Below are positions 9,494 to 14,993 of a stretch of 64,000 nucleotides of DNA, in pieces; the stretch's first letter is position 1, and every line of letters starts with the position of its first letter. Position numbers and translations under genes: made by a program. Source of the stretch: Octopus sinensis (Eukaryota); assembly GCF_006345805.1 (NCBI RefSeq), contig NC_043011.1, forward strand, positions 65,112,464 through 65,176,463. The letters run 5' to 3'. Below the pieces are notes generated by a model. It did not search any database. It saw only the letters and a program-made list of their open reading frames with translations, and was not told the DNA's origin.

Positions 9494-9593
9494 GTGTATC
9501 AACGTCTTTCTTTATTCCCATGTGTACTGGTTACTCGGACATTCGTTGTGCCTACACCTATAGAAACAATGCAGCCGCACGCCCTGTCCATCG
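9494..9593 (+). CDS. Gene A exon 2: (S)VSTSFFIPMCTGYSDIRCAYTYRNNAAARPVH(R)
   Basis: ttttccttcaaatcctag| acceptor, CG|gtaggt donor. 100 nt, open in the phase set by exon 1, codon-aligned with three paralogous exons. Confidence 0.85.
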
Positions 9594-10139
9594 GTAGGTA
9601 TGAATAAAATAACAGATTACATTATTAATCTGAATGAAAGTTTGCAAACATAAAATACTTAAAATGTTGTTGTTCTTATGTCACCTTTTATCGTCAAATT
9701 GTGTCTATGTAAAATTCATATTTGACAAAATATAATTTATATATATTTTTGTTATATATAATCTATTGGAGAATATTAGAGAAGGAAATATAATTTATGG
9801 ACATTTGTATTTCTAACTCATTTTTTCCGAATATAATTTTTACTGTTCATTCTAAAATCTGTGTTCATTAATTAAAACATTGTTTGTACGATGTGATTAA
9901 TAACTAAATATTTTATAATGGAGAAAATATCAATTTGAAAAATTCATCATGTACAAAATTACAGAGAGTTTGAAGTAAAATTCATAATGTAATATCTGAC
10001 AACACTCCGACCTTGGTAAACTGATTGACCTAACAATACAAAGATTAATATGGTTTAGAAGTGAATATGTAATCATGAAAATACAAGGTAATTTTGAAAG
10101 TCTGAGGATGCGATTGGTTACATAGGAAAACAAAGAAGG

Positions 10140-10700
10140 ATTGGCATTTTTCTGATATTAGTATTAACATTAAAGGACCATGCCTGTTTCCCCATCATCA
10201 TGCATGTTAGTATGAGGAACCGAATATCGAGCTTAATCTTTGCCAATGAACCCGTACTTGGACGGATGACAAACTTTATGAAGAAACATGCTTGATTGTT
10301 TCATTAGAAAAACGGCAGAAACCACGGAAAACAGGTTTTTGCAAGACGATATGAAACAGAGGCTGCCATTAAGAGACAGTTTTAGAACTGCTACAGGATG
10401 TTGTGTGGTTCAACGTTTGAAAACAGTCGGTTGTCATGATTGTTCCCCCGTCACTCATTAGTATGACGGACGAAAAAGCGAGGTTAAGCTTTGCTAAAAT
10501 TATCGTAGTTTGGATGGATGACAATTGATTCTGTCTGTTCTTCAATGACAAATGCAAGTTCAGTTTGGTTGCCTTCGGTAATAGGCAGGACATGAGACGT
10601 CTGAAAATTGCAGGATTGCTACCTTAATGCCTGAAGATATGATGGAAACTTTGAGCTAGGCGTGTAATGGTATAGTGAAGGGCTTCTTCAATAATTTAGG
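10140..10700 (+). mobile_element. Tc1-like transposase remnant, 5' part (paralogs about 31900-32500, 45000-45640, 63160-63790)
   Basis: Degenerate ISMTDEKARLSFAK...DKCKFSL segment typical of Tc1 N-terminal/first catalytic D region. Confidence 0.65.
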
Positions 10701-10719
10701 CAGAATTACTTTCAGGTAT

Positions 10720-11190
10720 TCATCAAGTGTTCTGGTGGAATTTCGAACCGTATTAATTCCGAAGGTATTATTGTTTCCGTTCTCACATTTTTAGTAGCTT
10801 GCGCTCTTATCCACTGCGCTATATGTCCATAGGCATTTATAAAGCGAGTTGTGGGGCTTACAGGCCTAAACATTTTTGGTTTTCTTGATACCGTTTTCCA
10901 TATTACACTCAAATCAGTATTAGGTCTGCTTAACAGTTTACAGCGTCCTGACGCAATTGCCGCCAGTTTTAATTTTCCTATTTTCTAATGGTTTTCTCTG
11001 CCTATTAATTTAACTTCATCCCAGAGCGAAAGGTGGCCTCCGCTTTTCCATACAGGAACGGCTATGACCGCTTGTCAGAGCCTACCCCATTGATCAAATT
11101 CTGGATCAGGTAGGAAATTCCACCATGAAACCTGATAAAAGCTGTAGAGTAAATCAGCCGAAACGTTGACAACAAACACTATGCAGACAA
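10720..11190 (-). mobile_element. Penelope-like remnant inserted in the Tc1 (paralogs about 32500-33060, 45640-46200, 63790-64000)
   Basis: PTTRFINAYGHIAQWIR resembles the PLE GIY-YIG TTRRLxxRIxEHIPxWL motif. Confidence 0.45.
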
Positions 11191-11239
11191 ATAATGTGTG
11201 AGAATCAAAGTTCTTTGTTTGTCTAAAATATAACATCCT

Positions 11240-12200
11240 CCATTTTCTACACTGCTCTTCCACCCCTCTGGTAGACTTGTACGTCCCCTTTTTCAAACTT
11301 TAATTCACCCTGAAGAAATACACATTTCCAGTCTTTTTGTGGCCACGTCTACAGTATTCATTTTTTTCTGTCCAAATGATTTTGAACATTGCGGAATAAT
11401 TAATGATGGAATGGGGCAATGTCGGCGAATATGTTCGGGGGGGCATCGTGTCGCATTAAAACACGGCCAACATCCGAACCAGCCTTATTATTATCGTCAT
11501 GGAACCAATGATCGTCGATTTACTTCCAACGCTAACGTAAGACGCGCAAGTTGCTTGTAAATCTTCACAGTGGACACAAGCTTTTCAAACAGTGGGTAAA
11601 GTCCTTGTTTAATGTCTGTGGTTGGTGTTTCACCTTTCCCTACACACTCACTTCGACGCTTGATATTTCCAATGTGAACCCATTTTTAGACACCAGTCAG
11701 TATTTGGTCCAAAAATGGTTCATTCGTGAGACATGTCAGCAAAGAAGAAGGCACACACACTCTCTGCGCGCGATTTGATATGGACATTGTGTCAGTAACC
11801 CATCGACCTAATTTACTCACTTTTACAATGGTACGCTGTTGTCAATGAATGGTTGAACGACGAAGTCTAATTTTCTCTCCTTGTTCCTCAACATTTACGA
11901 TCGGATATCGTTCCACCAGCTTTTGCGGCACGTGGTGATTGATCGAACTTTTAGATCGAGGCTTGTCTACTAGTCTGTAGTTTCCGTCTCGCAATTTCTT
12001 GAACCGTCGTTGACACTGGTTTAAGCTAATTGTCGATGCCAAAATACTACATTTATATTCCACAAACATTCCGTTGCCTTGTTGCTTTGTCACTTTCTTT
12101 ATACCTTTGAAAATAACTGTTAAAATATTCACTCTTCAAATGTCTTACTGAGAAGTACAAACTAAAATTACTATAAATTACTTTTATAGCAAGTTGTTAC
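11240..12200 (-). mobile_element. Mariner-like transposase remnant (paralogs about 33070-34130 and 46230-46640)
   Basis: QRRFKKLRDGNYRLVDKPRS; paralog reads WETKPHPTYSPHITPSDHELFRS; EGTYKSTRG C-terminus. Confidence 0.8.
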
Positions 12201-12229
12201 AGGCGGTTTACCGGGTTACTCTCCGAATT

Positions 12230-12730: not shown

Positions 12731-12848
12731 TTCCAAATAAATATGTTTCGTTTCATAAATTATTTAGTTATTAATCAGTTCCTACAAATTTTATTATAAT
12801 TAATAAACATACTTTTATGTTAGGATCCCTTATTAGGTTCATAATATA

Positions 12849-13887
12849 GAATTTGCAATAAGGAATTAACCAGTTATTTTTAAGTTGTGGAATCTATTTC
12901 ACATGTCGTCCACAGACACCTGCCATTGTGAAGAGAAATTATGAGTGAAAAAATGGCTTTATTTATAGCGGCTGTTACCTGTCATTTCTAAACATTTCAG
13001 GGTTTTGAATCTCCCTTAGTCATAATGGTGACTCGTTCATAATTATAAAGATTCTTCGTCTCTGTATTTTATAGTAACATGTTTGGCCATTCATGTTTAT
13101 ATATATATACATATATATATATATATATATATATATATATATATATATATATATATATATATATATATATAATATGAATGTATTATATATATATATATAT
13201 ATATATATATATATATATATATATATATATATATATATATATATAATAATAATAATAAATATTAGGGAATAAATCCAAATTTACAGGGAAAAAAATCAGA
13301 TATAGGATTAAATCCAATTTTATAGTAAAATATTATATAATATTAATTAGAGACAAAACCACTATTTTGCAAACAAACAAGGAAAGACTTAATCAATACA
13401 TAAAATTTTAATAAAAAGTAAAAAAAAAGTAAAAAAATTTATGTATTGATTAAGTCTTTCCTTGTTTGTTTTGCAAAATAGTGGTTTTGTCTCTAATTAA
13501 TATTATATATATATATATATATATATATATATATAATACATTTTTTACATTACGTTTCTAATTATCTAACTTTCACTACTCATTTTCGGTGATTTTGTTG
13601 TGGCTCAAATTCACTGCTCTCTTCTCATAAACGCTGTGCATGGCATTTGAATGCAAAACTTGAATGTGTAGGAAGTGTTGATACATTTCTCGTTATAATC
13701 GAGTCACCATTATTAGTAAGAGAAATTCAAAACCCTGACATGTTTAGAAATGACTGGTAAAAACCGCTATACATAAGGCCATTTTGATCACTCATTATTT
13801 CTCTTTGCAATAGAAGTTGTCTGTATGCGACATGTGAAATAGAATCCACAACTTAAAGATAACTGTTTAATTCCTTATTGCAAATTC
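12849..13887. mobile_element. MITE-like element with about 195-bp terminal inverted repeats
   Basis: 12849-13043 is roughly 85% reverse-complementary to 13690-13887 (visual estimate). Confidence 0.75.
13335..13508. repeat. Palindromic AT-rich mini-element, about 72-bp arms
   Basis: attaattagagacaaaaccactattttgcaaacaaacaaggaaagacttaatcaatacat and its reverse complement, with a 1-nt indel. Confidence 0.85.
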
Positions 13888-13889
13888 GA

Positions 13890-13990
13890 TATATATATAT
13901 ATATATATATATATATATATATATATATATATATATATATATATATATATATATATATATATATATATATATATATATATATATATATAT
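13890..13990 (+). repeat. (TA)n microsatellite, one of more than 20 in the window
   Basis: Direct tandem repeat. Confidence 0.95.
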
Positions 13991-14089
13991 AATTGAAAAT
14001 ATACAGCTTGCGATGGGTAAATTGTCACTATTTGATATTTCTAATTTTGCGTATATGCATTATTTGTTTTGCTTTCGTCGACTCGTCCT

Positions 14090-14810
14090 CTATTCACCAA
14101 AGAATCATCGGTTAGGCTCCATTTTTGAGAATTACATCACGATATTGCAATTCACTATGACAAGAAGTGGAACATATGTTGTACTGGAATGGACAAGGCA
14201 CAGAATTCTGTATATGGGGGTGTGTATCTGAGGACAGCGCGTGTAATCAGTGTGACGAAATCAACCGTCATCGTGTTTGAAGTAATCACTAATAGTTGCA
14301 GCGTTGTGCCTGCTTTCCCCTTCCCACTCGGCCTCAAACTGAACTCGAAAGCCTGTATCACATGTCTGACGGAGGTAGTGAACAGTGGGAGAAAAGGGTG
14401 TCTACTGGAAGGCTGTATGTCTAGAGACAGGACTCCACACCCTGCCACATAAGCAGGAGAAAACAATCATGGCTGCCTGAAAATTTCTATGAGAACATCA
14501 ACCCAACATCAGCCCACGAACCTCCCCAGATTGCAGCCCATATGATTATCACGTGTCTGGAGCTCTTCATCGACAGAGCAAAAGATAGAAATCCTTATAA
14601 CACAAAAGATGGACTGAATGAAGGGATTATGGCAGCATTGAACAACTTAACCAAGGACACATTCTAGAAAAGTTGTACGTGATTCCAAGGTCGCCAATGG
14701 CAATTATTATATTCAAGGAATGTACCCTTTGGCTTTTCAAGATATTTTCGTGTCAAGTTGGGAAATATATCTTCTAAAATGAGGGATCAGAATTAATTCC
14801 CGTTGGGTAT
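14090..14810 (+). mobile_element. Tc3/maT-like (DD37D-type) transposase remnant (paralogs about 35680-36420, 46660-47420)
   Basis: VIVFEVITNSCSVVPAFPFPLGLKLNSKACITCLTEVV matches the VMVLGVVSxEGxVMPPHFFPxGLxVN pattern; QDSTPCH follows. Confidence 0.7.
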
Positions 14811-14935
14811 GATTTAGATGTCCATTTATTCACCCCGCATTGTATATATACCTAGATACAGAACTGACTGCAGTCAATAGACATCCCATAATATATCGTT
14901 TTATTTTTTATTTTCTTCTTTTCGTCTTTTCTCAG

Positions 14936-14993
14936 GTTATTTGGCTACGCTATATTAACAACTATTCTACAGACACAAATTATTTTAGAATGA
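14936..14993 (+). CDS. Gene A exon 3 coding part: LFGYAILTTILQTQIILE* (protein 65 aa)
   Basis: Long polypyrimidine tract ending ctcag|. Phase-2 frame supported by synonymous differences versus gene B (GCT/GCC, TTA/CTA). Confidence 0.75.

Follow-up and report, generated by a model that had tools for sequence, protein, structure and literature searches.

The window analysed here, 64 kb of Octopus sinensis DNA (NCBI RefSeq assembly GCF_006345805.1, contig NC_043011.1, positions 65,112,464 to 65,176,463), contains four unannotated paralogous genes, g1 to g4, that lie in tandem on the plus strand and have a common three-exon layout. Exon 1 resembles a signal peptide, exon 2 encodes a hypervariable cysteine loop (C-x7/8-C) followed by an N-A-small...R-(P) motif, and exon 3 codes for LFGYAILTTILQTQIIL, then one to five residues and a stop. 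An initial annotation, placed at g1, had proposed that the C-terminus is a glycosylphosphatidylinositol (GPI) attachment signal and that the locus therefore makes surface-anchored disulfide peptides of about 20 amino acids (aa). What stands out most clearly in the array is an exon 2 that has diverged far faster than its flanking introns. The C-terminus matches the published architecture of a GPI signal, and the cited copy, as far as the window shows, is probably a pseudogene.

Gene model of the array

A single reading frame runs from an ATG-started hydrophobic exon 1, which ends in phase 1, through exon 2, where it is rich in Cys, into exon 3, which supplies the hydrophobic tail; the GT-AG exon boundaries are conserved among the copies (Table 1). 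Exon 2 follows a conserved pyrimidine-rich acceptor ending in (c/a)ag and closes at G/GTAGGT (GTACGT in g2; the slash marks the exon border), carrying two codon bases over into exon 3. The exon 3 acceptor, a long polypyrimidine tract plus AG, is strong and is kept in three copies. The predicted junctions read ...TGGG/GTGTATCA between exons 1 and 2 (phase 1) and ...CG/GTTATTTGG between exons 2 and 3. In the Cys frame, the products are VSTSFFIPMCTGYSDIRCAYTYRNNAAARPVHR-LFGYAILTTILQTQIILE for g1, LPTCSNMCATRAAYYHCNNADVRVAPG-LFGYAILTTILQTQIILK for g2 and VSSICTMDLCKNAGGYYWCNTCKDNAAVRPVHG-LFGYATLTAILQTQIILTETVI for g3, each followed by a stop, and VSSSCIIGMCTGYSGFRCGTSYSENAGVRPAQR for g4, whose exon 3 is expected about 5 kb further on, beyond the window, from the homology of its intron 2 with that of g2. 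The two loop Cys are separated by seven residues (C-x7-C) in g1 and g4 and by eight (C-x8-C) in g2 and g3.

Upstream, a TATA-bearing block is the only one common to g1, g3 and g4. About 160 nucleotides (nt) past the TATA box it holds a hydrophobic, ATG-started open reading frame (ORF) that ends at a conserved G/GTGGAA, in the phase required by exon 2. Both the TATA box and the A[AT]TAAA signals are at plausible positions. A scan of the 1.5-2.7 kb ahead of each exon 2 found no other conserved signal exon of this form (ATG, hydrophobic stretch, phase-1 GT). The exon 1 product of g4, MYLALGLFSFFFLFW(G) continuing into VSSS, is predicted from its sequence to be a plausible signal peptide.

Another conserved ATG, within AATGCCG[GA]ACAAAGG, occurs at 7966, 43025 and 61901, about 35-40 nt past the TATA box of g1, g3 and g4. 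The short ORFs beginning there do not keep their frame from copy to copy, and the ATG would therefore belong either to the very start of the transcript or to an upstream ORF. The 25 nt past the presumed exon 1 donor (GTGGAAYTAATTATGTSTKTTTACA; 8144-8168, 43207-43231 and 62076-62100) are the best-conserved part of the block, with 3 of 25 positions variable, and could represent a splicing element or an exon running 15 nt further to a second donor.

Table 1. Exons and associated features of the four gene copies (window coordinates)
Feature	Position	Strand	Remarks
g1 promoter-like block, 5' leader and exon 1	7897..8187	+	TATAAA at 7929; 79-83% identity with the g3 and g4 blocks
g1 exon 1 coding part, MRFMYHVVAFCFFFVF then stop	8092..8143	+	In-frame TAG at 8140-8142, TGG in g3 and g4; phase-1 donor G/GTGGAA next
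g1 exon 2, (G)VSTSFFIPMCTGYSDIRCAYTYRNNAAARPVHR	9494..9593	+	Signal end VSTS; Cys loop C10-x7-C18; N24 N25 A A A R P V H
g1 exon 2 splice sites	9494..9593	+	Acceptor tccttcaaatcctag; donor gtaggt; two bases of the junction Arg codon
g1 candidate omega region	9565..9593	+	NNAAA at 9565-9579; spacer RPVH(R)
g1 exon 3, LFGYAILTTILQTQIILE then stop	14936..14993	+	Arg codon completed, then LFGYAILTTILQTQIILE and TGA
g2 exon 2, LPTCSNMCATRAAYYHCNNADVRVAPG	31238..31319	+	Mariner-like fragment adjoins acceptor; no upstream exon 1 block
g2 exon 3, LFGYAILTTILQTQIILK then stop	36495..36552	+	Ends ...ILK and stop; 96-nt deletion in 3' untranslated region
g3 promoter/exon 1 block	42827-43251	+	Upstream block common to g1, g3 and g4
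g3 exon 1 coding part, MRCA, stop, HVLALLCLVFLFW	43152..43206	+	TAA at 43164-43166; second ATG replaced by GCG
g3 exon 2, VSSICTMDLCKNAGGYYWCNTCKDNAAVRPVHG	44660..44759	+	Four Cys
g3 exon 3, LFGYATLTAILQTQIILTETVI then stop	47520..47589	+	Ancestral stop lost; extension of four residues
g4 promoter/exon 1 block	61696-62100	+	Upstream block common to g1, g3 and g4
g4 exon 1 coding part, MYLALGLFSFFFLFW(G)	62030..62075	+	Sole uninterrupted signal-peptide exon; upstream ATG of g1 and g3 lost
g4 exon 2, VSSSCIIGMCTGYSGFRCGTSYSENAGVRPAQR	62487..62586	+	Exon 3 off the window (beyond base 64000)

Divergence and decay of the copies

Compared with itself, the window proves to be a tandem segmental duplication (for example, 1-15300 against 54800-64000 at 80-93% identity), with whole gene units 80-95% identical among copies. 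The long second introns are 86-95% identical to one another (stretches compared: 9736-10687, 31375-32694, 44815-45844 and 62610-64000). Because the units are recent duplicates, conservation across all paralogs counts for little. The conservation that had been put forward in support of a GPI signal thus reflects mostly shared recent ancestry, and the part of it that stands is the exon 3 tail. We counted variable alignment columns among the paralogs in each region and in its flank. The coding part of exon 3 has 4 variable columns out of 52 versus 73 out of 308 in its flanks (one-sided Fisher test, p=0.005); it is the only region more conserved than its flanks, and it has been under constraint.

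Exon 2 shows the reverse. In its core, 38 of 62 columns (61%) are variable versus 27 of 91 in the upstream intron (p=1e-4), and exon 2 as a whole is 65-76% identical between copies versus 86-95% for intron 2. The proportions of nonsynonymous (pN, 0.25-0.58) and synonymous (pS, 0.24-0.36) differences both exceed the intron divergence of 0.05-0.14, exon 2 having diverged 2-5 times faster than the introns. Despite this variable core, the two loop Cys are kept in all four copies, with switching between TGT and TGC codons. The trees also disagree: introns group g2, g3 and g4, while exon 2 pairs g1 with g4 and g2 with g3. Indels measure 18 nt in exon 2 of g2 and 3 nt in exon 1, and these lengths, together with the kept Cys and the constrained exon 3, are evidence that the sequence is or was coding. 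Most simply, these alignments suggest an array homogenised by gene conversion or unequal exchange, with diversity retained in exon 2. The exon-focused divergence is in keeping with a peptide that had a function in the past or has one today; independently of any anchor, the array offers a clean case of such divergence and bears on how peptide diversity is kept up in tandem arrays.

Several copies carry disabling changes. A Trp codon in exon 1 of g1 is replaced by TAG, the fifth codon of g3 is TAA and its second ATG has become GCG, and no trace of an exon 1 block for g2 was found between 15.3 and 31.2 kb. Decay is also visible in the lost stop of g3, which adds four codons, and in the 96-nt deletion in the 3' untranslated region (UTR) of g2. 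Within the limits of the window, g4 alone has an undamaged 5' end; it may be the only copy that could still be functional, in an array that within the window is largely decayed. Because g1 has a nonsense codon in its signal exon, this copy is probably a pseudogene as far as the window shows, and the cited locus probably makes no peptide. The anchored peptides proposed for it are therefore not borne out, and the interrupted exon 1 of g3 and the missing one of g2 leave these copies no better placed.

Candidate GPI signal and competing readings

Published rules for GPI signals call for a small residue at the attachment site (omega), a small residue, mostly G, A or S, at omega+2, and a polar stretch next (PMC7125958; bioRxiv 10.1101/838680). 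The sequence should then be hydrophobic from about omega+10 to the C-terminus, 20-30 residues after omega, with a polar linker before (PMC7125958; 10.1101/838680). The last 26-30 residues of the family agree with the rules for omega, omega+2, spacer, tail and length alike, as the initial annotation had stated. The candidate omega is Asn, one of the small residues allowed (S, N, D, A, G, C, T); position omega+2 is taken by Ala or Gly (N-A-A in g1 and g3, N-A-G in g4). A polar spacer of 6-8 residues (ARPVHR and the like) leads to a tail that starts at omega+9 or omega+10, with a hydrophobic stretch of 18-22 residues reaching the C-terminus, 26-30 residues past omega. In g1, Asn25 lies 9 residues before Leu34, which is omega+9, and the ORF ends 26 residues past the Asn; g1 and g2 have 0-1 residue beyond the hydrophobic stretch and no cytosolic tail.

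The elements that had been described, N-A-small, a conserved Arg (RP in three copies) and the spacing to the tail, are all present in the sequence. That all paralogs keep them is true of the motif, found in four, but the tail is visible in only three, exon 3 of g4 lying outside the window. Likewise, the N-A-small pattern serves as a candidate omega site in g1, g3 and g4, but g2 fits only as N-N-A, with the omega Asn directly after the loop Cys; its N-A-D would put Asp at omega+2.

The array is best explained as a taxonomically restricted, tandemly duplicated three-exon family in an animal genome rich in simple sequence repeats (SSRs), with precursors of about 67 aa. In an intact member, the precursor would be imported into the endoplasmic reticulum and its signal cleaved near VSS/SSS, and the C-x7/8-C loop would be oxidised to a disulfide. 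GPI transamidase would then cut after the conserved Asn, removing the 26-30-residue C-terminal signal and adding GPI. What remains on the outer leaflet would be a tethered peptide of about 20 aa with a disulfide loop; the predicted mature part has about 15-23 residues with 2-4 Cys, and the arithmetic behind the proposed size is correct.

We used six human GPI signals (CD52, CD59, THY1, CD55, ALPP and CD24) as yardsticks for the tail. Against these, the best 15-residue Kyte-Doolittle window scores 1.2-1.7 in the family versus 1.7-2.4, the tail containing two Gln and three Thr. On a Hessa-type insertion sum the family tail comes to 2.9-3.6, which lies within the range of the yardsticks (0.1-3.5) and is too unfavourable for a stable transmembrane helix, arguing against one. 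A strict GPI-shape rule with a 9-residue hydrophobicity cut-off of 2.0 was failed by the family and would also be failed by CD55, and was relaxed. The permissive rule accepts all six human signals and the family; when the last 40 residues of family members are shuffled, 5-10% of the resulting sequences still pass it. The fit to a GPI signal is therefore genuine and modestly above chance, but weak evidence on its own; it gains its weight from occurring alongside a signal peptide, an ectodomain with a Cys loop and a last exon under constraint.

A number of results count against anchoring. No copy in the window is demonstrably both complete and intact. The omega region shows no more conservation than neighbouring intron sequence: at the end of exon 2, the N-A...R-P stretch has 9 of 29 columns variable versus 27 of 91 in the upstream intron. 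The candidate omega lies 1-7 residues past the disulfide Cys, and the polar linker is poor, the omega-10 to omega-1 stretch holding the loop Cys and aromatics (IRCAYTYRN in g1, FRCGTSYSE in g4); in g2 it is absent, omega-1 being Cys. The best 9-residue Kyte-Doolittle window reaches 1.7, versus 1.9-2.8 in the six yardsticks, and the permissive rule is also passed by 37 of 609 (6.1%) arbitrary window ORFs of at least 45 aa. The exon 1 donor G/GTGGAA is weak by rough hand-scoring with a vertebrate-type consensus, and a nearby TAT/GTGTGT donor would lead to a second exon 2 frame that is open in all four copies and lacks the hydrophobic tail. Homologues were searched for with a four-paralog profile against 5.8 billion protein clusters, which returned nothing at E<=10, and with a HMMER scan of 1.84 billion representatives, in which the only matches at E<=0.001 were three spurious repeat proteins, each a sum of weak repeated matches.

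Overall, the GPI interpretation holds for architecture and size and is not supported for the product of the cited locus, with the weak tail hydrophobicity, the low specificity of the rule in this genome and a frame resting on a weak exon 1 donor also telling against it. For intact members of the family, we tentatively take GPI anchoring, as predicted from sequence, to be the best single reading of the tail, at a probability somewhat short of even. If intact copies are expressed and anchored in this way, their peptides would be among the smallest GPI-anchored products known and, to our knowledge, the first that combine a disulfide loop with hypervariability, which would suggest that they act at the cell surface in recognition, immunity or signalling. 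A more specific and unlikely proposal is that the intact members may be natural membrane-tethered mini-ligands, that is, hypervariable single-disulfide loops of about 20 aa on GPI, whose introns are homogenised by gene conversion while the peptide exon is kept different. If this were true, engineered tethered toxins would have an equivalent in nature, and the smallest products anchored by GPI would include a class with disulfides.

The alternative of a free secreted peptide, with a cleaved C-terminal propeptide and the Asn-Ala or Arg as an endoprotease site (legumain-type or monobasic convertase-type), is improbable but deserves weight. The hydrophobic tail would then be a discarded sorting or folding pro-piece, and the mature loop would be soluble and similar to an antimicrobial or signalling peptide. 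Secreted immune and venom peptides typically have a hypervariable core flanked by conserved pre and pro regions, and the excess of variable columns in the exon 2 core over the intron conforms to this. Also in its favour, an invariant Arg lies 4 residues past the conserved Asn, with a second Arg or a Gly at the exon 2/3 junction. Known animal C-terminal pro-pieces (myticins, mytilins and mussel defensins) are, however, anionic and without an ORF-ending hydrophobic stretch, and the family has no dibasic sites. Myticins and mytilins are small secreted Cys peptides encoded by multicopy, highly variable genes, with a C-terminal extension that is removed on maturation. The resemblance to them that had been raised does not extend to identity: the family has 2-4 Cys versus 8, its extension is hydrophobic, ORF-ending and of net charge about 0 to -2 rather than anionic, and no similarity was found in protein searches.

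There is a comparably small chance that the gene model is wrong at its 3' end or in its frame, which would leave no hydrophobic tail and no GPI signal. In one variant, transcripts end at or retain the exon 2 boundary, where a stop follows directly past the donor in all four copies (CGG TAG in g1 and g4, GGG TAG in g3, GGG TAC GTA TGA in g2). In the other, the phase-0 TAT/GTGTGT donor, 15 nt on, opens a frame beginning VYQ... that ends with GYLATLY and a stop 22 nt into exon 3. The unusual conservation of the 25 nt past the assumed exon 1 donor (3 of 25 variable) favours this second donor, which also scores better in g4 by the same kind of rough hand-scoring with a vertebrate-type matrix. The open state of the alternative frame in all four copies might seem to do the same, but given either protein the other frame would be open with a probability of 0.24-0.72 per copy, so that openness is uninformative in either direction. 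In the Cys frame, about 126 codons include 12 Cys, at conserved spacing and with switching between TGT and TGC, versus 5 in the other frame, and exon 3 positions 24-52, which would be UTR in the alternative frame, are variable at 2 of 29 columns versus 51 of 257 in the 3' flank. The conserved exon 3 acceptor of three copies likewise supports the assumed model, and a profile search with the alternative frame also found no homologues.

It is rather more doubtful that the array is entirely a relic, in which no copy, g4 and any outside the window included, is functional and the GPI-like shape is either a remnant or a side effect of T/A-rich composition. Disabling 5' lesions in three of the four copies, the lost stop of g3 and the UTR deletion of g2 are what such a relic would show, as are the lack of any protein or transcript-derived match in the 5.8 billion clusters and the 6% of arbitrary window ORFs that pass the GPI-shape rule. 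On the other hand, neither an exon 2 that evolves 2-5 times faster than introns nor an exon 3 more conserved than its flanks is expected if the array had always been neutral, and g4 is intact as far as the window shows.

Very improbable is a membrane-integrated microprotein that keeps its tail, either as a type I single-pass protein or as a 43-aa tail-anchored protein starting at the ATG that lies 1-3 codons ahead of the first loop Cys in all four copies. Although the tail is the sole hydrophobic segment past the signal, its stretch is only 17-18 residues long with the Gln and Thr mentioned above, the free energies of insertion add up to about +2.9 to +3.6 kcal/mol, and a basic cytosolic flank is lacking; moreover, the Cys pairs suggest an oxidising compartment, and one would have to put the in-phase, signal-like exon 1 down to chance. 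A neuropeptide precursor was also considered and dropped, given no dibasic sites, no amidation Gly and a loop unlike the allatostatin-C, CCAP, elevenin and CNMamide patterns.

Known small anchored peptides and the setting of the array

Very small GPI-anchored products are an established kind, with which the family shares a precursor plan but not sequence or chemistry. In CD52 and CD24, as in the family, only a very short mature part lies between the signal peptide and a C-terminal signal, which has about 25 residues, small omega and omega+2 residues and a short polar spacer ahead of its hydrophobic end, and their precursors of about 61-80 aa compare with about 67 aa here. They differ in being Ser/Thr/Asn-rich glycopeptide scaffolds without disulfides and show no sequence similarity, whereas the family lacks N-x-S/T sequons, has a Cys pair, a hypervariable core and tandem multicopy genes, and ends in a tail less hydrophobic than that of CD52. 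CD52, with 12 aa, has been cited as the smallest GPI-anchored product (PMC7125958). Arabidopsis arabinogalactan (AG) peptides and GPI-anchored peptides are further natural examples, of about 10-20 residues and encoded, like the family, by small multigene families (PMC6726743). The plant AG peptides belong to another kingdom, have arabinogalactan cores rich in hydroxyproline, Ala and Ser without Cys loops, and are not homologous to the family.

Ly6/uPAR proteins such as lynx1, and the engineered tethered toxins that use their GPI signal, resemble the proposed product in presenting a small disulfide-constrained ligand on GPI. In Ly6/uPAR proteins, the hydrophobic segment of the GPI signal is encoded by the last exon, as the tail is here. 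The family does not contain a Ly6 domain, which has 8-10 Cys in about 70-90 residues versus 2-4 Cys in about 20, and no similarity to it was found in protein searches.

The window is AT-rich (about 34% GC), and perfect SSRs, mostly (AT)n and (AAT)n, make up 5.5% of it, a share far above that of most animal genomes. Scans of the window for tRNA genes and Rfam families gave no matches. It also contains reverse-transcriptase ORFs of long interspersed elements (LINEs) and mariner-like fragments. LINE-type reverse transcriptase and zf-RVT ORFs lie at 19569-22035 on the minus strand, with a copy at 49225-50311, the two being 95% identical, and a further reverse-transcriptase fragment is found at 8413-8802 on the plus strand. 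Searches with the reverse-transcriptase ORF gave matches of about 50% in corals, starfish, shrimp and fish, one of 76% in assembly GCA_024449705.1 and one of 90% in a Logan contig of SRR7158634 (990 bp), whose DNA is 91% identical to the copies in the window and would thus come from the same species or a near relative. Exact look-ups of three ORFs of the window matched no record.

Degenerate mariner-like transposase fragments (...PYSPDIAPSDFHLF...) occur at 30745-31183 and 39754-40172, along with an ORF at 33090-33476 on the minus strand. The first of them ends about 50 nt upstream of the exon 2 acceptor of g2, the copy without a promoter/exon 1 block. Intron 2 of g1 holds a foldback-type inverted repeat at 12844-13892, with arms (12844-13049 and 13686-13892) about 85% complementary and, between them, (AT)n tracts and a smaller palindrome around 13300-13500. 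Downstream of g2, a palindrome without a spacer spans 37669-38356, its 344-nt arms being 90% complementary around an AT-rich centre.

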